Below, one piece after another: positions 22,501 through 63,794 of a stretch of DNA of 64,000 nucleotides. Each line of letters starts with the position of its first letter. The first letter of the stretch is position 1. The notes beneath the pieces were generated by a model, which was not told where the DNA came from, searched no databases, and saw only the letters and a program-made list of their open reading frames with translations. The position numbers and the translations under genes were made by a program. The DNA comes from Macrostomum lignano (taxonomy: Eukaryota): the NCBI GenBank assembly GCA_002269645.1, contig NIVC01001726.1:124001-188000 (forward strand). Direction: 5' to 3'.

Positions 22501-25500
22501 ACTTTGTTCTTATACAAATAACAAATAACAAATACAGATAAAATAGACTTAGGTTAAAACCTCAAACCTCCTATAGATTCTTCATAGGAATATGTTTTAT
22601 TGGACTTTTTGTTTATAGGTATATAAGTACTTACAATTTTCCAGCTTTAATGAAACTTTTGCCTGGGACTAAGTGGGCTGCCAATATGAAAAAATTAAAA
22701 AATGTAAAGAATGCTTTTTCTAGTGGTGACAGGACTTCAATTTATAATCTTATATACTATAAAGAATAATTTGATATACATAGTTTCATTTTTAATGATC
22801 TATTTTTAAGTCAGACACTTTTTTGGAAATACAGTCACTTAGTAAAAATAAGCTTTGTAAAGCAGTCAAATTGAAAAAGAGAAATAATTTCAGAAATTTT
22901 GTACAATGTTGCATATGATAGGTCAAATACTGAATTCACTTATTAAATGAAAAAGTGCCATGTCACTGTTTGTTTTTTTATTATTTTGCCATGTTACAAT
23001 GTGCTATTCATCTCTTACTTTCTAATTTGCTAACTATCAAATGGTGCTCTAAACTACAGGGCTATCTCAAAAGTAGAGTTTTTTTTTCTTGAGCTCTGTA
23101 ATGAGCTCTTTTTATGCATGCAAATTTAGGTTTGGTATAAAATAAAGTTAGCACATTTAGTTAAAATATATTAATAGAAATCCTCATTGAGTACACAATG
23201 AGTACACAAACACAATCTATGCAATATTTCTCTATGCTTTTCTTGATCAGGCATTCATAAGAAGGAGCTAGTATATTTGTATCTGAAAATTTTAGGACAA
23301 ATTCAAAAAATTCTTATACCAAAAAACCATATGATAGTTTGATTTTTTCCTTAATATACTTTTGTATACACAGTATTATTCTAACATTTTTTTAAAATAT
23401 ACAAAACATACATGTAAATCTTCACAAAAAACTCAACACAGTTATTAAAAAAAGCTTTTTATCAGTAAAATGACCAACTTACTGACCATATTCAGGATCA
23501 TGGCACACCTGCACTTGAACAAATCCTATCAAAAAAGTTTAATTTAATTGATTGTGCCATGTGCCAGAATAAATCCGATCAAAAATTTTGCATATGCTAT
23601 GCATTGCAACTATTCTTATCAAATATTTGGTTGGGGAGAAAGTTCCCGCGGTTTCTAGAACTTTCTGTCTAAGAACTTTCTGGAACATTCTAGAGCCCGG
23701 CTGTGTGGGTATATATTGAGGGTGGGTGTGTGTGATTCTAACATGCTATTTAAACCAAAGAGATTACTCACTAGTCACCAGCATTATGGATCTCTCTCGG
23801 GCCTATATTTGTGGTCTCCTGCTCTACGACTTCAAATCTGGACTGTCAGCCGCAGAATCCAGCCGTCGCATCAACGCTGCATTTGGTGCGGGTACCGTGT
23901 CTGAACGCACTGCCCAGGACTGGTTTGCGCGGTTTCGTCAGGGAAATTTTAACCTCGAAGATTTGCCCCGGTCAGGTCGTCCTTCCGAGGTTGATGACGA
24001 CCGGCTGCGCACACTCGTAGAGGCTGACCCTCGGCAAACCACGCGTGAGTTAGCGCAAGTCCTTGATGTAGACCATAAAACAGTCACCAGTCATTTGCAT
24101 CAGCTGGGCAAGGTGTACAAGCTGGCACAATGGGTACCCCACCAATTGTCAGATTGGGACAAGGAGCGCAGGGCAGAGGTGGCCACTTCTCTCCTCTCCT
24201 ACAGGCGCACGCACAACTGGCTGAAGTCCATCGTTACGGGCGATGAAAAGTGGTGCCTGTACGTCAACATCAAACGTCAACGATTATGGGTTGATGCTGA
24301 CGCGACGCCTGAGCTGCAGCCAAAGGCCGGACTCCACCCACGCAAGGTCATGCTGTGCGTGTGGTGGGACTGCAAGGGCGTCATCTACTACAAACTGCTG
24401 CCACCCAACACATCGATTACGGCCAACCTATACTGCCAACAGCTGGACCGATTGGCCGCCGCCATCGCACAGAAGTGTCCAAACCATGGCCCGGTACGAT
24501 TCCTCCATGATAACGCTCGTCCACACACTGCTAGGGTGACTCGCCAAAAGCTACTGGACCTTGGCTGGGAATTGGTGCCCCATCCACCATATTCACCAGA
24601 CTTGGCACCAAGCGACTATCACCTGTTTTTGTCTCTGGCCAACGCCTTGAACAACAAAACCTTCGCTGATGATGAAGAGCTCGATAACTGGCTGAACAAC
24701 TTTTTCACTTCAAAGCCAAAGAAATTTTACAGTGACGGTATTATGAGTCTGCCCAAAAAATGGCAGAAGGTGATCGATTGTGATGGTGATTATTTTATTT
24801 CTTAATTGGCTTTTTGTTTAAAAAAACTCAGTTTGACAGAAAGTTCTAGAAACCGCGGGAACTTTCTCCCCAACCGAATAAGTCTGCTTGCATTGTATGC
24901 TAGAACTTTTTTAAAGAAATAAAAACAGAAAATTCTATATTTTCTATAATTTTTATATGTCTACATTTGAAAGATACTATTAAAACTTAAATTTGAATCT
25001 GTTTCATAGAAATTGCAATGTTAATGTATTTTAATTAAAAAAGCCATCAATATACAAACACTGGTGAAGAAAAAATGCTAATAAAAAATATATGTTGGTG
25101 TTTTGTTTGCAAAAATATTGTCTTGCTGAAAGTTTTTTCTTGCAACAAATTGTGCTAATTTTTTGTCTTGCACTATACTGTGCTGGATTTTTTCCCTTTT
25201 GCACTGGGATTTTCTATAAAAAAAGCCATTGTAGTGCATTGCTATGTTGGGTTTCTCCTTTGCTCTCACTATAGCCTTCCCCCATGTGCCTTGGCATTGT
25301 GTGTATGCCCTTGCACTATTATGCAACAATGGCACATTGTGCTCACTAGCTTGCATGTACTCAAACTAGTATATATATGCTTAAATATATGGCCATGAGA
25401 GACCAAGTTCTGCACCCACACAAGCGCACTACAGCCGTCTTCCTGACTATGTCTAAGGCTTATTGAATCTCTTATTTTGGTGTAAGACCAAGATGGCCAC

Positions 25501-39397: not shown

Positions 39398-39940
39398 TCA
39401 ACGCTTGGCATTGCGTTTACGATGCCTTAGAAAGTTATGCCAGAGCTTGCGGCATTCTACTGGCATCTTGCAGAGGTCCGAGAGGGCCGTGATGCCCAGA
39501 GTGCGGCGGTCCACTTCCGTAGCCGGGCAGTCGAGAAGGACGTGCTGGAGGTTCTCTGGTTCGTCACCGCACCTCCGGCATGTCGGATCCGCTGTCCAGC
39601 CAATACGATGGGTATTCACTCGCAGCCTTGCGTGTTTTCCTGAGCGGAATTGTGCGTAGTCCGCCCGCTCGGCTCTCGTCCAGGTGGCCGTCCGCTGTCG
39701 GTTGGATTTGCTGCGCACCGCGGCGTTGCCCAGTGTTGTAATTGACGCGGCGGCGAGTAGTCGCTGATGCGAACGCGACGTCACTTGATTTACAGTCGCA
39801 TCAGACATCTGCTCGCGAGCTGGTAATTGCCGGTCTTGATTGTTAAGACTCGACCCAGCGGTAGTCTGATTTAAAAAATCAATGATTTTTGACTGTCGAC
39901 CGCGAGACCTGCTCGACTTTGGCGTAGGCGCTCCAGCCAT
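39398..39940 (-). CDS. 180-aa single-exon ORF ending in a non-LTR retrotransposon ORF2-type C-terminal CCHC domain
   Basis: ATG in AGCATGG context; uninterrupted ORF; AQFRSGKH..L...HRIG....PTCRRCGDEPENLQHVLLDCP (C-x2-C-x8-H-x4-C) is the hallmark LINE ORF2 C-terminus; no RT or endonuclease upstream in frame. Confidence 0.6.
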   Translation of the reverse strand: MAGAPTPKSSRSRGRQSKIIDFLNQTTAGSSLNNQDRQLPAREQMSDATVNQVTSRSHQRLLAAASITTLGNAAVRSKSNRQRTATWTRAERADYAQFRSGKHARLRVNTHRIGWTADPTCRRCGDEPENLQHVLLDCPATEVDRRTLGITALSDLCKMPVECRKLWHNFLRHRKRNAKR

Positions 39941-45854: not shown

Positions 45855-52824
<6,970 letters not shown>

Positions 52825-53917
52825 TGCTGGAGGAGACGCTCGTGCAGAGGCGGGGGGTTCACCCATAGACAACTCGAAGAGATCATTCTGTACCATGGAG
52901 TTCTATAAATAACTTCCAGTCCAGATGCTGAAAATCTGAAATTCTAGGACTGATGAAATTTTCGGCAGGAAAAAACAGTTCGCCAGCAACAATGGGCTAT
53001 TGGCAAAATAGGATTTTTTGTTATTCTTAACTAGATTTTTAAATAACCGATCCATGAACACCTTGACTAAGCGGCCTCCAGCATAACATATACGATTTGC
53101 GTCCGTAGTTCTACTTCAGCTGCCATGGTAAATTGCTAAAAAAAATCAAAACGATTTTAGAAGATTTTTTAAAGATTTTTATATATTTTTACCTTTATGT
53201 ACACAGCTGTTTACTGACAGTAGAAATGATAGCTTTTTTTCGCCTGTTTCCTGTTTCGATACCCGAGGGTATCCTCTCTTGGATTCGTTTTGGCTATACA
53301 GCTGCATGTTAAAGGCTGAAACCAGCTGTGTTTGTACACTCGTAACCATGACAACGTTTACAGATAAAATAAACTGTTTATTGAAATCAGTCTTCGACTG
53401 ACTCGAGAATTACCTCAGTAATTTATTTTAGCCGCTTTGTTAGTTTCAATTTATTTTAGCTTTTAATGTTCCAACTGATCTTACTTCAGTACGAGTATCT
53501 GTGGGACTCCCCTGAGCAAATCTCAGCTCCAAAGGAATCTCACCCACAAGACTCCACTGAGAAAATCTCTGCATAAACGAATCTCACCCATGAGACTCCA
53601 CTATGAGACTTCATTAATTTCACTTAGTAACTCGTTTAGTACAAGTGTTATATAAACTTGTACTTTTCCTTCGCAATATAACTTTGTACAGATATTTTGC
53701 TTATATTCAAAATTAGCTTTGAATATCATCGCCTTTGAAAATTATCACCGAACAGAAAAGCAAGGACACATGGTGTAAATAAAAAAGATTTAAAAAAATT
53801 AAAAAATAAAACTACTACTCTTAATATACTAATTACTTGTCTCCCATGACTACTCCTAGAGGGTTACTTAATTCACTACACTGATTACCCTGTTGCAGGG
53901 TACATCTTAGGGGCTTA

Positions 53918-55878
53918 ATCTGTGAGTCACACCATTAACCCATCTGTGAGTCACACCATTAACCCATCTGTGAGTCACACCATTAACCCATCTGTGAGTC
54001 ACACCATTAACCCATCTGTGAGTCACACCATTAACCCATCTGTGAGTCACACCATTAACCCATCTGTGAGTCACACCATTAACCCATCTGTGAGTCACAC
54101 TCCCTACCCCAGCCGAGAGTCACACTCCCTACCCCAGCCGAGAGTCACACTCCTTACCACAGCCGAGAGTCACACTCCCTACCCCAGCCGAGAGTCACAC
54201 TCCCTACCACAGCCGAGAGTCCCACTCCCTACCCCAGCCGAGAGTCACACTCCCTACCACAGCCGAGAGTCACACTTCCTACCCCAGCCGTAAGTCACAC
54301 TCCCTACCACAGCCGTAAGTCACACTCCCTACCACAGCCGTAAGTCACACTCGCTACCACAGCCGTAAGTCACACTCCCTACCACAGCCGTAAGTCACAC
54401 TCCCTACCACAGCCGAGAGTCACACTCCCTACCCCAGCCGAGAGTCACACTCCCTACCCCAGCCGTGAGTCACACTCCCTACCCCAGCCGTGAGTCACAC
54501 TCGCTACCCAAGCCGAGAGTCACACTCCCTACCCCAGCCGAGAGTCACACTCCCTACCACAGCCGTAAGTCACACTCCCTACCCCAGCCGTAAGTCACAC
54601 TTCCTACCCCAGCCGTAAGTCACACTCCCTACCACAGCCGAGAGTCACACTCGCTACCCCAGCCGTAAGTAACACTCCCTACCACAGCCGAGAGTCACAC
54701 TCCCTACCACAGCCGAGAGTCACACTTCCTACCACAGCCGTAAGTCACACTCCCTACCACAGCCGTAAGTCACACTCCCTACCCCAGCCGTAAGTCACAC
54801 TCCCTACCCCAGCCGAGAGTCACACTCCCTACCCCAGCCGAGAGTCACACTCGCTACCACAGCCGTAAGTCACACTCCCTACCCAGCCGAGAGTCACACT
54901 CCCTACCACAGCCGAGAGTCACACTCCCTACCACAGCCGTAAGTCACACTCCCTACCATAGCCGAGAGTCACACTTCCTACCCCAGCCGTAAGTAACACT
55001 CCCTACCACAGCCGAGAGTCACACTCGCTACCCCAGCCGTAAGTAACACTCCCTACCACAGCCGAGAGTCACACTCCCTACCACAGCCGAGAGTCACACT
55101 TCCTACCACAGCCGTAAGTCACACTCCCTACCACAGCCGTAAGTCACACTCCCTACCACAGCCGTAAGTCACACTCGCTACCACAGCCGTAAGTCACACT
55201 CCCTACCACAGCCGAGAGTCACACTCCCTACCACAGCCGTAAGTCACACTCCCTACCACAGCCGTAAGTCACACTCCCTACCACAGCCGTAAGTCACACT
55301 CCCTACCACAGCCGTAAGTCACACTCGCTACCACAGCCGTAAGTCACACTCCCTACCACAGCCGAGAGTCACACTCCCTACCCCAGCCGTAAGTCACACT
55401 CCCTACCACAGCCGTGAGTCACACTCGCTACCCCAGCCGTGAGTCACACTCCCTACCCCAGCCGTGAGTCACACTCCCTACCACAGCCGTGAGTCACACT
55501 CCCTACCCAAGCCGAGAGTCACACTCCCTACCCCAGCCGTAAGTCACACTCCCTACCCCAGCCGTGAGTCACACTCGCTACCCCAGCCGTGAGTCACACT
55601 CCCTACCCCAGCCGTGAGTCACACTCCCTACCACAGCCGTGAGTCACACTCCCTACCCAAGCCGAGAGTCACACTCCCTACCCCAGCCGAGAGTCACACT
55701 CCCTACCCCAGCCGTGAGTCACACTCCCTACCCCAGCCGAGAGTCACACTCCCTACCACAGCCGAGAGTCACACTCGCTACCCCGCCGTGAGTCACACTC
55801 GCTACCCAGCCGTGAGTCACACTCCCTACCCCAGCCGTGAGTCACACTCCCTACCCCAGCCGTGAGTCACACTCCCTA
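53918..55878. repeat. Compound minisatellite: 24-bp GAGTCACACCATTAACCCATCTGT (about 8 copies) then 25-bp GAGTCACACTCCCTACCCCAGCCG(A/T)
   Basis: Both units share GAGTCACAC; the array abuts the stop codon at 55876-55878. Confidence 0.96.
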
Positions 55879-58800
55879 GCCAAACGCCAACGCGTGAGTC
55901 ATGAAGCCGGCGGTGCGCATCAGCCTGTAGGCCACCCGGTCAGGCCTCGCCGCCCACACCATGAAGCACCTGCCGTAGCAGAGGGCGCCGAAAAACGCGG
56001 CCGTGACGCAGGGAGTGCCGAACCGGGGCATCGCGTGCTGCTGCCACAGGAAGGCGTCGTCATTCTTCGGGCCGTCGCCTTCAGCGCTTTCGAGGACTGA
56101 CAAAGCCGAGTCGGCCCTAAATTTAGTCTTGGACTTCTGAGAGCTGGCCACGACAAGGGTTTGCCCGCCAAAAAGTACTTTAGACAAGTAAAGGCCCTCG
56201 CAGAAGAACACGCTGGTGCCCGTGTTGCCGCCGTAGCTTTTCTGCTCCAAGTAGGCCAAGACAATCCAGTGCCGCCAGGGAAACGTATCGGACAGCAGTG
56301 CCTGCAATCTGTATGGGGGCAAACAGGCCTCGGTTTCTAGTGGATCCCTGGCCTAACACCTGCCAGTCTATCATAACACCTGCCAGTCTGCCATAACACC
56401 TGCCAGTCTATCATAACACCTGCCAGTCTGCCATAACATCTGCCAGTCTGCCCTAACACCTTCCAGTCTATCATAACACCTGCCAGTCTGCCATAACACC
56501 TGCCAGTCTGCCATAACACCTGCCAGTCTGCCATAACACCTGCCAGTCTGCCATAACACCTGCCAGTCTATCATAACACCTGCCAGTCTGCCATAACACT
56601 CGCCAGTGTGCCATAACACTCGCCAGTCTGCTATAACACCTCCCAGTCTGCCATAACACCTGCCAGTCTGCCATAACACCTGCCAGTGTGCCATAACACC
56701 TGAAAGTCTACCATAACACCTGCCAGTCTGTCATAACACTCGCCAGTGTGCCATAACACTCGCCAGTGTGCCATAACACCTCCCAGTCTATCATAACACC
56801 TCCCAGTCTATCATAACACCTCCCAGTCTGCCATAACACTCGCCAGTGTGCCATAACACTCGCCAGTCTGCCATAACACCTCCCAGTCTATCATAACACC
56901 TGCCAGTGTGCCATAACACTCGCCAGTCTATCATAACACCTCCCAGTCTATCATAACACCCGCCAGTCTATCATAACACCTGCCAGTCTATTATAACACC
57001 TCCCAGTCTGCCATAACACCTCACAGTCTGCCATAACACCTGCCAGTCTGCCATAACACCTGCCAGTCTATCATAACACCTGCCAGTCTGCCATAACACC
57101 TGCCAGTCTATTATAATACCTCCCAGTCTATCATAACACCTCACAGTCTGCCATAACGCCTCCCAGTCCTCCAGATCACTTTCCAATCCCCCTCAGTCTC
57201 GCCAGGTGCAGCATCAGCGGAACGAGCAGGTCAACGTCCACAAAGACTCAACGGCACAGGCTGCGCTCACCCCAGCGTTAACAACCGGCTGTCGATCCGC
57301 CCGCTATCCTTAACAAACTTCCTGACCATCGGCTCCAGATTTGTCTCATACAGCTTCCTGATTTCTTCGCTCCATCGCTTCAAAATCTCCACGATGGACT
57401 CCATCCGCATTGACCAGGTGTGCAGCAGAGTCCTCACCAGCTTCTGCTTGTTTTGCAGCATCCCGCCCTGCTGCGAGATCATCACGGACACGATGGACAG
57501 CTCGCCGCTGCGCACCACCGTCCGCGCCATCGCCAGCAGGAAGGTCAGCGAGCCTCGCCAGTCCTTGCCGTCAGTGGAGTTGATCGCCAGCTCCAGCAGG
57601 CTGTTGGCCGACGCCTTGTCGGTGCCGGACATCGACCGCCAGATCGCCAGCAGCTCCTGCGACTCGGAGGAAATCATCTGCCGCAGGCGCGTGAGCTCGT
57701 GGGCCCGCTCGGCTGGTGGCAGACCGATGGAGTTGTCCAGCATCCGGCTGCCCGCCATCGCTAGCAAACAGGAGCGCTCAAATTTTCTTCTCCAGACCAA
57801 ATCCATGCGGTTGCTCATGTTGTTGACGGCGTCCAGATGCAGCTGGTCCAGCTTCGTGCGCGACTCGAGCAGCCGATATGACAAAGCCATTGAGGACGAG
57901 GAGTTGGAGCCGGGCATGGAGTTGAGATCGAACAGCTTTAGAACTGTCTTGCCGCCCATGAGCACCTTCTTCATTAGATAGGACAGCCTGTGCCGAGCGG
58001 AATAGCCAGTGGGACACCTTTTATCCCGCCGTCTGTGAGCCAGAGAGCTCCCATCCGATCCCATCTGATCCTATTTGATCCCATCTGATCCCATCTGATC
58101 CCATCTGATCCCATCTGATCCCGCCTGATCCCATCTGATCCCATCCGATCCCATCCGATCCCGTCCGATCCCATCTGATCCCATCCGATCCCATCTGATC
58201 CCATCTGATCCCATCCGATCACATCCGATCCCATCTGATCCCATCCGATCCCATCCGATCCCATCTGATCCTATCTGATCCCATTCGATCCTATCTCAGG
58301 CATCTGATCCCATCCGATCCCATCTGATCCCATCTGATCCCATCTGATCCCATCCGATCCCATCTGATCCCATCCGATCCCATCTGATCCCATCCGATCC
58401 CATCCGATCCCATCTGATCCCATCCGATCCCATCTGATCCCATCCGATCCCATCTGATCCCATCTGATCCCATCTGATCCCATCCGATCCCATCCGATCC
58501 CATCCGATCCTATCTGATCCCATCCGATCCCATCTGATCCCATCCGATCCCATCCGATCCCATCCGATCCCATCCGATCCCATCCGATCCCATCTGATCC
58601 CATCTGATCCCATCCGATCCCATCCGATCCCATCCGATCCCATCTGATCCCATCTGATCCCATCCGATCCCATCCGATCCCATCCGATCCCATCTGATCC
58701 CATCTAATCCCATCCGATCCCATCTGATCCCATCTGATCCCATCCGATCCCATCTGATTCCATCCGATCCCATCTGATCCCATCCGATCCTATCTGCTCC

Positions 58801-59337
58801 CATCCGATCCCATCCGATCCCATCCGATCCCATCCGATCCCATCTGATCCCATCCGATCCCATCCGATCCCATCTAATCCCATCCGATCCCATCTGATCC
58901 CATCTGATCCCATCCGATCCCATCTGATTCCATCCGATCCCATCTGATCCCATCCGATCCTATCTGCTCCCATCCGATCCCATCCGATCCCATCCGATCC
59001 CATCCGATCCCATCTGATCCCATCCGATCCCATCCGATCCCATCCGATCCCATCCGATCCCATCTGATCCCATCCGATCCCATCCGATCCCATCTGATCC
59101 CATCCGATCCCGCTGTCACCTCTCGGAAGAAGTTCCATCAAATTCATCCAGGTCGAGCGCGAAGGCGAGCTCCCAGTTGGCCCGGGTGACCTGGATGATG
59201 TCGCTGAGCAGCTGAGGATTCTGGCCAATTGCCGGTCCAATCAGTGGTGACGAAGCCGCCGCGGAGAGCAGGCGCAGCCAGATTACCATGGCAACTAGCG
59301 GCTGTGCTAAAAGTGCAACTCTGCCGAGTTTAAGCAT
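55876..59337 (-). CDS. Putative secreted SE-cephalotoxin/rapunzel-like protein, about 439-455 aa, three exons
   Basis: Exon 1 from ATG 59337 or 59289 to 59120 (AG|GTGACA), exon 2 57987 (or 58032) to 57271 (GG|GTGAGC), exon 3 56308-55876; phases 2 and 2 consistent. Hydrophobic N-terminus, long amphipathic helical region, and LLSDTFPWRHWIVLAY...GG...FCEG...FGGQTLVVASS. Gene structure is solid; the family is recalled similarity. Confidence 0.7.
56352..57170. repeat. Intronic 20-bp minisatellite CCATAACACCTGCCAGTCTG
   Basis: Direct reading. Confidence 0.96.
58050..59110. repeat. Intronic 10-bp repeat CCATC(C/T)GATC
   Basis: About 105 copies; fills the intron almost from donor to acceptor. Confidence 0.97.
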
Positions 59338-59759
59338 ATTTTAGATTGCAAAACATTTTCTGCCATTCAGTCAATAAGGAAGATTAAAAGTATCTCAATT
59401 TTTATTTTGGACTTCGCAAATCCTTGCAAATGAAAATTAGTCTATGGCTCGAGGTTGCTATGCCGACAGCAAGTTAAGCAGAGTTAGTTGCGGTTAGTGC
59501 ATAGCTTAATACGTGAGCTGGGGAAGTGCAGCTCTCGCCTGGTGGGTTGTCGTGCGATACTCCCATTGAGGGCCAGCCCCCAAGGCACAGGGAGTGCAAA
59601 TGCCTGTGGCCCTGTGTACGAGTTCATTGACACTCTATTGTTTTATAATATCCATAGCAACGGAAAAATGAGTTGATTTAATTCCACTACAAGCGGAGAC
59701 AAATCTGTTTATGCGCTGCATCTTAAAAGATATTCAGTAAAACCATAAAAGCACCAAAT

Positions 59760-59765
59760 TTTATT
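59760..59765 (-). terminator. Candidate polyadenylation signal AATAAA of the glucosidase gene
   Basis: TTTATT on the plus strand, about 76 nt past the stop at 59841. Confidence 0.5.
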
Positions 59766-59840
59766 TTGAATTCGCGCGATAAATCCGGAACTTTTTAATG
59801 ATTAAAACAAAATTTCAGCCCAGTTTAAATGAAAGCATTG

Positions 59841-61027
59841 TCAGAGCTCTTCTCGCCGACTCCTCTGGAACACTCTGAGCTCAAGCTGGTCGGGCTTGCA
59901 GTCAGCGGCCTTCGCAATTATGGCGTCTCCGGGCTGCATGGCAACGCCTGAGACGCTGAAATCGTTGCGATTCGCGGCTCTGAAGTCGGCAACGAGGCTC
60001 AGAGAGCGGCAGCCAGAGGCACTCAGGTCCAGCACCAGCGGCTCCGTGTTGGCACTGATGTACATCGCCACGATGTACCTGCGGGGTCAGAGGATTTCCG
60101 TTGAATCGATTCAAGTAGCCCTGAGTCAAATTGTCTAATTGTATCTATGCTTTGTGGCCCAGCAGATGAGAATCTGAGAGGCTTGCCCAGCAACTGAGGA
60201 TCTGGGAGGCTGGCCCAGCAGCTGAAGATTGGGAGGTGCCCAGCAACTGAGGATCTGGGAGGCTGGTCCAGCAACTGAGGATCCGGGAGGCTGTCCCAGT
60301 AACTGAGGATCCGGGAGGCTGGCCCAGCAACTGAGGATCTGGGAGGCTGGCCCAGGTACTGAAGATTGGGAGGTGCCCAGCAACTGACACTGGGAGGCTG
60401 GCCCAGCAGCTGAAGATTGGGAGGTGCCCAGCAACTGACACTGGGAAGCTGTCCCAGCAGCTGAAGATTGGGAGGCTGGTCCAGCAGCTGAAGATTGGGA
60501 GGCTGGTCCAGCAGCTGAGGATCTGGGGGCTGGCGGTGCCCCTGAGACTCAATCTCCATAGCCAGTTCAACTCACCCGCTGTCCCCCAGACCCCGCCAGT
60601 AGGCCAGCAGCTCAGCCTCCGTCTCCATGAGGAATCGCAGCTCGCCATCGAGGAACTCCCGCTGGCGCCGCAGCTCGGCCACGGCCTGGAAGGCAGCCAG
60701 GGTGGAGTTCGGCATCCGCAGCTGCCGGGCAACGCACTTGGCCCCGAAGCCGGACTCGACTGGCAGCCAGGGCGGCGAGGGGCCGTCGGTGAAGCCGGCC
60801 TGAGGGCCTTCGCTCCACAGCATGGGGCCGCGGGCAGGGTCGCGGCTCTGCTCGGGGAATCGCCGGCCAAGCGGGTCGACCATCTGCTCCGGCAGCAGCT
60901 GCAGGTCCGACATGCCTAACTCGTCGCCATAGTAACAGGTCGGCGTGCCCGGCAACGTCAGCAGCAATGTGTTCAAAGCTCGCACGAATCGGCCCTCGGG
61001 CGGGAAGCGGGTGGACAGGCGCGAGTT

Positions 61028-61059
<32 letters not shown>

Positions 61060-63223
61060 CGCCCTCTGGGGCGGCATTCAGGAATCGCTGAGCCGCAGTT
61101 CGCAGGCAGGCGGCGTTGCAGAATCTCCCGGAGCCGCCGCCGCCGCCGCCGCCGCGCTCAGTGCCCGAGGCGGTGAGCAGGCCAAAGTTGAAGGGGAAGT
61201 CGGCCAGCGCCTTGCCGCGCCAGCTGTAGTAGCGCATCAGCGCTGGCAGGTCGCTGTACGCCTCGGCCACGAGGAGACGCCGCCGGCCAGTGGCGCCTGC
61301 CACTTCGTCCAGTACAAGGCGCCACTCGGCCATGACGTCGTAGGTTTCGTTGTAGTCGGTGGTGAAATCGTGCCGCAGGTAGTTGTGGTCGGCCTGTCCC
61401 GGTGTAGGGAGGTTTAAAGTGCATCAGTAATTCCTGCGTGTTTTGCTCGGCTATTACGTGTTCTGTTGCTCAATAAATAAGCATCCTGTTTGTTACTAAT
61501 TAGGCTTCTAATAACTTCTGTGCCGTCACAAGCTATTGCAGTCAAGTGAGGCAAGGTAAACAACCGTTAAACACCCATCCTGCCCGCTAAACACCCGCCC
61601 TGCCCGCTAAACACCTTCCCTGCCCGCTAAACACCTTCCCTGCCCGCTAAACACCCGCCCTGCCCGCTAAACACCTTCCCTGCCCGCTAAACACCCGCCC
61701 TGCCCGCTAAACACCTTCCCTGCCCGCTAAACACCCATCCTGCCCGCTAAACACCTTCCCTGCCCGCTAAACACCCGCCCTGCCCGCTAAACACCTTCCC
61801 TGCCCGCTAAACACCCATCCTGCCCGCTAAACACCTTCCCTGCCCGCTAAACACCCATCCTGCCCGCTAAACACCCATCCTGCCCGCTAAACACCCGCCC
61901 TGCCCGCTAAACACCCATCCTGCCCGCTAAACACCTTTCCTGCCCGCTAAACACCCATCCTGCCCGCTAAACACCTTCCCTGCCCGCTAAACACCCATCC
62001 TGCCCGCTAAACACCGATCCTGCCCGCTAAACACCCGCCCTGCCCGCTAAACACCCGCCCTGCCCGCTAAACACCCGCCCTGCCCGCTAAACACCCGCCC
62101 TCCCCGCCACCTACGGGGTCATCCGTCAGTTTCTCGGCCCCGCGGCCACCGGCTCGTCCCGCAGCATTGGATCCTCGAACAAGTGCTTGACGGCGTCCAC
62201 CCGAAAGCCGTCGACTCCTCGTTCTAGCCAGAATCGAACCACGGACCGCATAGCTTCGCGCACGCCGGCGTGCCTGAAGTTCAAGTCGGGCTGCTGGGCG
62301 CAGAACTGGTGCAGGTAGCACTGGCCCCTGATCGGGTCGAACTGCCACGCGCTGCCGCCGAAGCAGCTCAGCCAGTTGTTGACGCCGCCTGGAGCTTCGC
62401 CGGCCTTTGTCTGCGGCCGGCAGTCCGTCCACACGTAGAAGTCGCCGTATGGGCCGGCGGGATCTCGGCGGCTGGCCTCGAACCAGGGGTGCCGGTCGCT
62501 TGTGTGATTTGGCACGAAATCCATCACCAGGTACATGCCTGGGTAGGTGGTCAGTAGGTAGGTAGGTGGGTAGGTAGGTAGGTAGGTAGGTAGGTAGGTA
62601 GGTAGGTAGGTAGGTGGGTAGGTAGGTAGGTAGGTAGGTAGGTAGGTAGGTAGGTAGGTAGGTAGGTAGGTAGGTAGGTTAGTAGGTAGGTAGGAGGTAA
62701 GTAGGTTAATAGGTAGGTAGGTGAGTAGGTAGACAAGTAGACAGATAGATAGGTCAGTTTGATAGATAGCTAGGAAGGTAATGAGTAGGTAGTGGTTGTA
62801 GGTAGGTATATTGGTAGGCAAGTAAGTCGATTTGTTGGTGGATAGGTAGGTAGGTAAATGGGTAGGTTGATGTTTGTTTGGGAAAGTAAACAGGTACTAA
62901 GGGGGGTAAAAGGGTCGGTACGACCGATAAGTGGCAAGCTAATACGAAAGTAGATAGGCAGGTAGGATTAAACAGTCTAAATCCCTTTATTCCTAAGAGA
63001 AAATCATGCAATCCCCAACCCGCTACTCACAAAGATGACTCACCCCGTTTGTGAATCTCCCTGACAAGCTGGTCAAAGTCGGCCAGACTCCCAAACACGG
63101 GATCAATGTCCGTGTGGTTGCTGATGTCGTAACCGAAGTCGGCCATCGGGCTGGGGTACACAGGGGACAGCCAGACGGCCCTGGCGCCCAGACCCGATAT
63201 GTAGTCGAGTTTCTCGATGATTC
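59841..63223 (-). CDS. GH13 alpha-glucosidase/maltase or rBAT(SLC3A1)-like protein, 5'-partial, with an apparent 1-nt frameshift
   Basis: Exons 63223-63044 (GIIEKLDY...WLSPVYPSPMADFGYDIS), 62538-62115 (MDFVPNHTSD, QPDLN, DGFRVDAVKH), 61393-60576 (VAEAY, NWVLGNHD, GTPTCYYGDELG, RDPARGP) and 60078-59841. All three catalytic acids are present. The N-terminal exon(s) are not in the window. Confidence 0.92.
60150..60530. repeat. Intronic 28-30-bp minisatellite CCAGCAACTGAGGATCTGGGAGGCTGGC
   Basis: Degenerate tandem copies in the last glucosidase intron. Confidence 0.9.
61565..62100. repeat. Intronic 20-bp minisatellite CCTGCCCGCTAAACACCCAT
   Basis: About 26 copies ending about 13 nt from the donor at 62114. 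Confidence 0.97.
62555..62760. repeat. (GGTA)n microsatellite with decayed extension
   Basis: Direct reading. Confidence 0.95.
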
Positions 63224-63284
63224 CTGGAAAATTGAAGAAAAACAAAAAGACAAAAACTCTGTTCGTTAGAATCGACCAAGAAGG

Positions 63285-63410
63285 ACCGGTGTACACCCTG
63301 AGTGAGTGCGTAGAGTACTGGCGCGCTTCTGTGTGCTCAGGAGTCAACGGAATGTGCAGAATTGCCTCAGCGCTGCATGGCTGTGGGACGATGCCGCCGA
63401 TGGCTACACT
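63285..63410 (-). repeat. Dispersed repeat family, copy 3 (glucosidase intron, inverted)
   Basis: Reverse complement reads GGCGGCATCGTCCCACAGCCATGCAGCGCTGAGGCAATTCTGCACATTCCGTTGACTCCTGAGCACACAGAAGCGCGCC...CAGGGTGTACAC, matching copies 1 and 2. Confidence 0.82.
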
Positions 63411-63794
63411 CCAGAATGTCGATGAAGAGTCACCTTGGAAACGACCAAGACAAAACAGCACTTCTAGCGCCTGCCACCTCTTTTTGAGAGCTGTTTTTCT
63501 CGCAAGTGGGCGATAGAGGATTCTCCGGTAGATTGAAACTGGGACCCAGGTGCGCTCTGGGTTATGCTAATTAGTCTGTCATCAATTTGGATGCTTCACG
63601 AATCCTTGAGAGTGGGGCATGGCAACTGCGGTCGTTTGTTGGGGAACTGCTTTGAAGACGCTTGCTTTGTTGCTTTGCCACCTGTGACACTCTCGGGTCG
63701 GCTGCGAGATTTTGAGATTTTTGTGTCTTCTGTTCAATGGACAGTATCAGTTGTGAGATATTTCTCACACCACCTGAGATATCTTTGTGTCCAC

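Follow-up and report, generated by a model that had tools for sequence, protein, structure and literature searches.

A three-exon gene of Macrostomum lignano for a putatively secreted, divergent member of the cephalotoxin-like (CTXL_M) family

Does the flatworm Macrostomum lignano encode a secreted toxin of the SE-cephalotoxin/rapunzel family, as a sequence-only reading had proposed for a gene at positions 55876-59337 of the stretch analyzed here? This stretch, called the window in the following, comprises 64,000 nucleotides of contig NIVC01001726.1 (assembly GCA_002269645.1, positions 124,001 to 188,000 of the forward strand); positions refer to the window if not stated otherwise, and the candidate gene is situated on its minus strand. 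The SE-cephalotoxin-like/rapunzel family spans cnidarians, molluscs, nemerteans and fish. Among its members are a toxin that acts potently on prey, a protein of the coral skeleton and regulators of growth and immunity in fish, and for none of them is a molecular mechanism known or a structure solved. All things considered, it is probable that the locus harbors an intact gene for a secreted, divergent paralogue of the CTXL_M family, which would serve as an extracellular effector.

The three-exon gene on the minus strand is real and intact. From the list of open reading frames (ORFs) and the reading of the splice junctions, the limits of the coding sequence are exactly the positions given above (exons and introns are listed in Table 1). 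The joined exons comprise 1368 nt and are in frame, which gives 455 codons followed by a TAG stop; no other start codon lies between the upstream in-frame stop and the ATG at 59337, which has an A at position -3. Residues 46-455 of the candidate align collinearly to residues 72-463 of paralogue P0005 (BLASTP E 4e-25), the alignment is ungapped at both splice junctions (residues 73/74 and 312/313), and tblastn searches with paralogues hit exon 3 at E 4e-12. The stop at 55876 is genuine, because candidate and paralogue share the same C-terminal FG end, and the collinear homology to paralogues that are intronless supports the frame as well as the two junctions and the stop codon. Together with the GT-AG introns and the in-frame joining, this homology bears out the three-exon gene that had been proposed, and all peptide motifs quoted at that time (ELLAIWRSMSG, SLLELAI, FLLAMARTVVRSGELSIV, WSMRMESIVEIL, FPWRHWIVLAY, CEG and GGQTLVVASS) are present in the spliced translation. 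The protein had been estimated at about 440 amino acids; it is indeed compact, but its exact length is 455 residues.

A rather different model of the same locus exists in UniRef under A0A1I8FN62 (P0001 in our searches; 773 amino acids, Macrostomum lignano), the only near-identical protein found for the candidate (phmmer E 9e-213). If this entry was right, the true gene would be larger, with a further exon upstream (60071-59856) and others downstream, between 51.4 and 47.8 kb. The presence of such a model in a public database and the mapping of its pieces back to the stated places in the window, at 90-100% identity and for its exons at 98-100%, speak for it. However, the first 68 residues come from the minus-strand ORF 60071..59841, which directly follows a GH13 alpha-amylase catalytic domain present in full up to profile position 443/446, and which ends in a stop with an AATAAA behind it in a 500-bp spacer; the upstream GH13 gene most likely ends with this ORF as its last exon. 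The middle part of A0A1I8FN62 corresponds to the N-terminally clipped candidate gene, and the C-terminal 300 residues are low-complexity readings from 51.4-47.8 kb (47854-51408), of which the pieces at 48.8-47.8 kb fall into the region of a plus-strand TTC39-like gene. Furthermore, all relatives start with a signal peptide and every one of them ends at FG, precisely at the stop of the candidate. A0A1I8FN62 is a chimeric mis-fusion, and a larger gene is highly improbable; the 455-residue model is better, because all relatives begin with the leader and stop at FG. The entry carries the misleading name 'Reverse transcriptase domain-containing protein', and the annotation value of the present model lies in correcting a public one, which fuses the candidate to its alpha-amylase-family neighbor and to spurious exons.

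The N-terminus of the deduced protein, MLKLGR-VALLAQPLVAMVIWLRLL-SAAASS, shows a positive n-region followed by a hydrophobic core. The hydrophobic leader expected from the earlier reading was recovered with a Kyte-Doolittle (KD) peak over 19 residues of 1.89 at residues 7-25, after which SAAASS follows. The sequence AAA/S fits the -3/-1 rule, with small residues at -3/-1 of A28 or S29, and a hydrophobic leader is likewise found at the N-terminus of all full-length family members. We infer that the leader acts as a cleavable signal peptide, via which the 455-residue precursor would enter the secretory pathway and be secreted. Beyond the leader, the next hydropathy peak reaches only 1.43 (amino acids 412-430). 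The mature protein would have a mass of approximately 47.6 kDa and an isoelectric point of approximately 9.4; most relatives are basic, too.

Regarding the architecture, an AlphaFold2 model from an alignment of six sequences reached a mean predicted local distance difference test (pLDDT) score of 63.6 and a predicted template modelling score of 0.56, while the model from the single sequence (pLDDT 39.7) was unusable. Helices are predicted from 103-131 to 306-320 at a pLDDT of approximately 60-80, followed by a C-terminal alpha/beta domain of residues 321-455 with strands between 324 and 454 (pLDDT 60-88), and the position of intron 2 coincides with the border of the two domains. The mature protein probably consists of a weakly conserved N-terminal segment containing a single amphipathic helix, a helix bundle at approximately residues 103-320 and the alpha/beta domain. 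In the latter, the family-invariant cysteines C348 and C412 probably form a disulfide, which would fit secretion. For cephalopod CTX, 4-7 helices and a small beta element are described, along with LDLa, Sushi, TSP1 and EGF modules (bioRxiv 10.64898/2026.04.09.716377). The layout of the candidate is qualitatively like these '4-7 helices plus beta connector' if compared in words, but the LDLa, Sushi, TSP1 and EGF modules are absent, i.e. no Pfam domain was detected and the protein ends at the conserved FG (residue 455). The candidate therefore has neither the length of approximately 1000 amino acids nor the cysteine-rich modules of the cephalopod cephalotoxins in the narrow sense. Hence, the earlier description as a compact protein with leader, helical part and second C-terminal domain, lacking the accessory domains, was correct, and the candidate probably represents the compact core form of the SE-cephalotoxin-like/rapunzel family devoid of cysteine-rich accessory modules. 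This absence is nothing special to the candidate, because the flatworm paralogues are generally of the compact form.

The family assignment follows a chain that leads from the candidate to a paralogue, from there to a Pfam family and finally to the name of this family; SE-cephalotoxin, the coral protein and rapunzel are related to it by name and description only. A phmmer search of the spliced protein against 1.84 billion cluster representatives matched P0001, P0002 and P0003, and the closest relatives are paralogues from M. lignano itself. P0002 is the independent M. lignano paralogue PAA78885.1 (BOX15_Mlig026676g3; E 2.2e-17, query residues 104-448), and P0003 was found with E 9.5e-4 for query residues 262-440. 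PF27742 (CTXL_M) is assigned to P0003, P0007 and P0008 by precomputed annotation and is carried by P0002 at E <= 1e-5, and the contig annotation names CTXL_M on P0002, P0003, P0007, P0008 and one neighboring paralogue. Compared to a profile of P0003, P0007 and P0008, the candidate reached an hhalign probability of 96.7 (E 4e-10, 228 columns, residues 207-447), and paralogue P0005 an E of 2e-45 over 389 columns. These comparisons support, indirectly, that the candidate is a divergent member of the cephalotoxin-like/rapunzel family (PF27742). Word-indexed homologue searches gave three relatives, all of which were used, and metagenome scans for related loci found none. SE-cephalotoxin, the coral cephalotoxin-like protein and zebrafish rapunzel were not among the matches of the homologue searches. 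In a Pfam scan to E <= 10, the relatives and all six aligned members showed no family and no recurrent weak match; SesA (0.11) and MtrG (0.037) appeared as single weak matches and were rejected as noise.

The last link of the chain is the name. We read 'CTXL' as 'cephalotoxin-like' and CTXL_M as 'cephalotoxin-like, middle domain'. The Pfam name is presumably derived from the coral 'Cephalotoxin-like protein' B7W114, for which the Swiss-Prot mnemonic is, as we take it, CTXL_ACRMI. It is unlikely that 'CTXL' abbreviates another toxin name, given the name of B7W114 and the fact that the earlier reading arrived independently at the same family. B7W114 bears the name 'Cephalotoxin-like protein' (PMC4043741) and matches the N-terminal half of the 1052-residue SE-cephalotoxin (PMC3748352), and SE-cephalotoxin-like and rapunzel proteins form one sequence family by BLAST (PMC6315956). 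Concerning the proposed SE-cephalotoxin/rapunzel membership, the homology to CTXL_M proteins stands by phmmer and hhalign, whereas the link to SE-cephalotoxin and rapunzel themselves is transitive via the family name. Among 25 papers that mention SE-cephalotoxin, none is about a flatworm, in agreement with the earlier statement that no flatworm member has been characterized, and no literature was found on the M. lignano gene identifiers or on PF27742. Public databases already list at least four further M. lignano paralogues as hypothetical proteins. The sequence family and its flatworm members, listed as hypothetical or 'secreted' with the Pfam domain attached, are already known; the divergent candidate member is new.

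The candidate would belong to a small M. lignano family of secreted CTXL_M proteins of approximately 440 amino acids. Contig NIVC01000661.1 contains three intact, intronless CTXL_M copies of 444, 442 and approximately 457 amino acids, each with a signal-peptide-like leader, and all three are matched by the candidate in tblastn (best E 4e-24). In their NCBI models (336-346 amino acids) the signal-peptide end is missing, and one 523-residue NCBI model covers two of the copies on the opposite strand. Like the candidate, the M. lignano paralogues fall into the length class of approximately 440-460 amino acids in full reading and possess a signal peptide, a collinear helical and alpha/beta layout, both conserved cysteines and the FG end. 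In contrast, the identity to the candidate amounts to only 23-26%, and the candidate differs by two small insertions and by lacking the ES-x-ELK..EQF motif. Moreover, the Mlig026676-type copies are intronless and three of them are adjacent, whereas the candidate, the only copy in the window, contains two introns filled with minisatellites. The intronless state of the copies on NIVC01000661.1 raises the question whether the introns of the candidate grew or arose by repeat expansion. The only relatives found outside of Macrostomum are likewise intronless single genes on short metagenome contigs (sources ENA ERZ3792534 and JGI 3300073457), which share 37% identity with each other.

Outside of an identical tract, the ratio of nonsynonymous to synonymous substitution rates (dN/dS) is 0.1-0.25 among the three adjacent paralogues. 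The family as such is under constraint by this ratio, which comes from three paralogues; the candidate itself has no close partner. Two of the three are DNA-identical over the last 159 codons, while the synonymous rate (dS) is 1.5-1.9 elsewhere, a pattern that suggests conversion between their C-terminal domains.

How far the candidate itself has diverged was analyzed in an alignment with six members, namely the three copies on NIVC01000661.1, P0003, P0007 and P0008. Of 44 columns without variation among the other six, it keeps 23, and it is the most divergent member found. Among the kept residues are K118, W138, T211, F222, W264, R267, F321, R324, Y331, G339, C348, G350, V364, S367, F375, C412, F454 and G455. 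Charged or polar residues are changed at several places (E to C146, H to K214, D to M293, H to T343), and two short insertions are found relative to the family. This divergence would also suit a decaying, non-functional paralogue, whose frame is open by chance in a repeat-invaded locus, and in addition the introns and the 3' flank are swamped by minisatellites, no poly(A) signal lies near the candidate and the protein collection holds no matching NCBI gene product. However, the 455-codon frame runs without a stop through three exons joined at canonical splice sites, the candidate has preserved the core of its C-terminal domain together with the two invariant cysteines and the FG end, and the neighboring, clearly functional genes in the window regularly have introns filled with minisatellites. 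Taken together, decay seems improbable.

The favored explanation of an intact gene for a secreted, divergent CTXL_M paralogue has to be weighed against several observations. No AATAAA occurs within approximately 2.4 kb downstream of the stop, where the 3' flank is a minisatellite. The predicted signal peptide is deduced from hydropathy and the -3/-1 rule only, and the structural model is moderately confident, with residues 1-116 below a pLDDT of 50. The Pfam scan assigned no family to the candidate, the Pfam copy used being older than PF27742, and the mis-modelled protein of the locus, A0A1I8FN62, has no precomputed Pfam match. Furthermore, 21/44 invariant columns are lost in the candidate, including the ES-x-ELK-x-x-x-EQF motif, which could reflect a changed function or relaxed constraint. 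Finally, no structural match among the PDB entries or viral predicted structures backs any mechanism.

For the function, a graded picture emerges. Outside of the cell, the protein may act on the surface or membrane of target cells as a defence, feeding or signalling effector, and a role as an extracellular effector of some kind is rather likely. A role in toxicity or defence is possible rather than probable, and pore formation specifically is unlikely; no test here demonstrates toxicity or pore formation by the candidate.

The most specific proposal is a membrane-permeabilizing toxin of the alpha-pore-forming type for defence or feeding, in which an amphipathic or hydrophobic helix would enter the target membrane upon opening of the helix bundle. 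The predicted secretion, the basic character and the long-helix build of the candidate fit to it, as does an amphipathic, moderately hydrophobic helix at a conserved position before the helical core (residues 74-95 of the candidate; KD 1.66 in P0005 and 1.38 in P0008), which is compatible with membrane activity but is no proof of it. Moreover, a salivary toxin that kills crabs belongs to the family (PMC4986456), and the gene family is expanded in the M. lignano lineage. Against this, none of 350,542 PDB chains reached E <= 0.001 in a Foldseek search, with MukF as best match (E 0.085), ClyA pores and protomers at E 0.5-0.6 (TM 0.12) and the fern insecticidal protein IPD113 at E 0.15 (TM 0.18); the query was the moderate-confidence model including the floppy N-terminus, which lowers the sensitivity of this search. 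The top matches, MukF, STAT3, 14-3-3 and tape-measure proteins, were set aside as generic long-helix proteins, and a library of viral predicted structures likewise gave no significant Foldseek match, generic helical proteins only. PDB sequence and family-profile searches found nothing below E 0.3. In addition, the paralogues are under purifying and not diversifying selection, by hydropathy there is, apart from the leader, no transmembrane-like segment save the weak peak of 1.43 at residue 412, and the biochemical action of SE-cephalotoxin itself is stated as unknown (PMC4986456; PMC6410017; bioRxiv 10.64898/2026.04.09.716377). In the prediction, elongated and helical shape, a small beta-containing element and secretion are shared by the candidate with alpha-pore-forming toxins of the ClyA/Hbl type, but there is no significant structural or sequence similarity and the likeness is one of general shape only. 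The pore-forming inference of the earlier reading found no backing in this structural comparison, in which no alpha-pore-forming toxin, be it of the ClyA/Hbl/Nhe, Cry domain I or colicin-like kind, was matched significantly, and we consider it an unlikely mechanism.

A secreted factor without toxicity is at least as likely as a toxin, although possible rather than probable by itself. By analogy to rapunzel/rpz5 or to the coral protein, the candidate might represent a signalling or growth-regulating ligand or a component of the extracellular matrix. In fish, members of the family influence the growth of the skeleton, haematopoiesis and the regulation of interferon (bioRxiv 10.1101/2025.08.09.669486), the coral member belongs to the proteins of the skeletal organic matrix (PMC3748352; PMC4043741), and the purifying selection on the paralogues also fits a non-toxic factor. 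However, the fish and coral members are likewise without known molecular mechanism, no receptor-binding fold is indicated by Pfam or Foldseek, and rpz5 is reported to be intracellular on the interferon pathway (bioRxiv 10.1101/2025.08.09.669486), which does not fit with a signal peptide.

Comparison with the described systems shows where the putative extracellular effector of M. lignano would stand. B7W114 from the coral Acropora millepora, a fragment of 473 amino acids with a signal peptide at residues 1-21, is secreted and of similar size to the candidate. Together with compact SE-cephalotoxin-like proteins of nemerteans and stingray, it corresponds to the core at the N-terminus of SE-cephalotoxin and is free of accessory modules, a likeness to the candidate that is drawn from descriptions. 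B7W114, however, sits in a skeletal matrix, a context missing in the flatworm. SE-cephalotoxin of Sepia esculenta (B2DCR8) and the decapodiform DECA-CTX, the founding members, are predicted to combine several helices with a small beta element and are secreted by glands; unlike the candidate they comprise 1052 amino acids with LDLa, Sushi, TSP1 and EGF modules, and their toxicity to crabs has been demonstrated. The zebrafish rapunzel family (rpz, rpz2-5) is compact, has no known domains and belongs to the same BLAST family (PMC6315956), a resemblance again by description, and its roles lie in developmental, haematopoietic or intracellular immune regulation (bioRxiv 10.1101/2025.08.09.669486).

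By itself, the candidate is an ordinary uncharacterized family member, and the label of a toxin should not be passed on without an assay. The useful products are the corrected gene model and the pointer to a compact-core family in a tractable flatworm. In this flatworm, a small family of compact, putatively secreted proteins provides a simple setting for studying the function of the conserved core by genetic means. It is quite improbable that the CTXL core of helix bundle and small alpha/beta domain, which lacks a counterpart in solved structures, represents a new metazoan class of membrane-active secreted effectors with the strongly diverged, intron-bearing candidate as a neofunctionalized copy; if this was true, RNA interference and transgenesis in M. 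lignano would make the mechanism of the cephalotoxin/rapunzel proteins testable.

Table 1. Positions of the candidate gene, its surroundings and its relatives
Feature	Sequence	Position	Strand	Description
Exon 1	window	59120..59337	minus	218 nt, from ATG; aa 1-73; ORF and GT donor GAGAG/GTGACA
Exon 1 content	window	~59337-59248 (leader)	minus	leader aa 1-28/30; then poorly conserved N-terminal region begins
Intron 1	window	57988..59119	minus	1132 nt, GT..AG; nearly all 10-bp minisatellite (58049-59111, 106 copies)
Exon 2	window	57271..57987	minus	717 nt, aa 74-312; acceptor GGCACAG/GCTGTCC, donor CTGGG/GTGAGC
Exon 2 content	window		minus	amphipathic helix, then long helical region with family-conserved K118, W138, P163, T211, F222, W264, R267
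Intron 2	window	56309..57270	minus	962 nt, GT..AG; mostly 20-bp minisatellite (56354-57168, 41 copies)
Exon 3	window	55876..56308	minus	433 nt, aa 313-455 and TAG; acceptor CATACAG/ATTGCAG
Exon 3 content	window		minus	C-terminal alpha/beta domain: FPWRHW, Y331, G339, C348-x-G350, VVASS, F375, C412, terminal FG
Intergenic spacer	window	59338..59840	minus	upstream GH13 stop to candidate ATG; AATAAA of upstream gene inside
Minisatellite at stop codon/3' flank	window	54090-55878		25-bp unit
Further minisatellites	window	53918-54100, 60155-60534, 61564-62107, 62542-62867		many more over 1-50000
Alpha-amylase (GH13) gene, upstream neighbor	window	60572-63461	minus	three exons, PF00128 E 1.8e-32, 2.8e-40, 2.3e-23
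Mariner/Mos1-type transposase ORF	window	23726-24805	plus	uninterrupted, 359 aa; Transposase_1 E 2e-26, HTH_48 E 1e-16
ORF with reverse-transcriptase zinc-binding tail	window	39398-39940	minus	zf-RVT E 1e-5, just under Pfam cut-off
TTC39/Iml2-like TPR gene exons	window	46912-49112	plus	PF10300 E 1e-26 for 46912-47316
CTXL_M paralogue	NIVC01000661.1	8349-9683	minus	adjacent copies in alternating orientation
CTXL_M paralogue	NIVC01000661.1	10340-11668	plus	as above
CTXL_M paralogue	NIVC01000661.1	12316-13803	minus	as above
M. lignano CTXL_M paralogues				BOX15_Mlig026676g1-g3 / Mlig027956g1 (PAA78885.1, PAA47548.1, PAA47549.1, PAA54935.1), BOX15_Mlig002390g1
Non-Macrostomum relative	metagenome contig L001	14-1555		intronless single gene
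Non-Macrostomum relative	metagenome contig L004	3-1364		intronless single gene

The minisatellites of both introns and of the 3' flank of the candidate have units of 10, 20 and 25 bp in 40-106 copies with 87-92% match, and the promoter is presumably situated in the intergenic spacer upstream of the gene. On the strand of the gene, the first AATAAA/ATTAAA follows approximately 2.4 kb past the stop (53377-55876), beyond minisatellites with 25-bp and 24-bp units. Much of the window is likewise rich in minisatellites, including the introns of the GH13 neighbor, which contain 20-bp and 4-bp repeats. Mobile elements are represented by the mariner/Mos1-type transposase ORF and by the ORF with the zf-RVT tail, which is probably a retrotransposon remnant. 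Part of the TTC39/Iml2-like region is read on the opposite strand in A0A1I8FN62.

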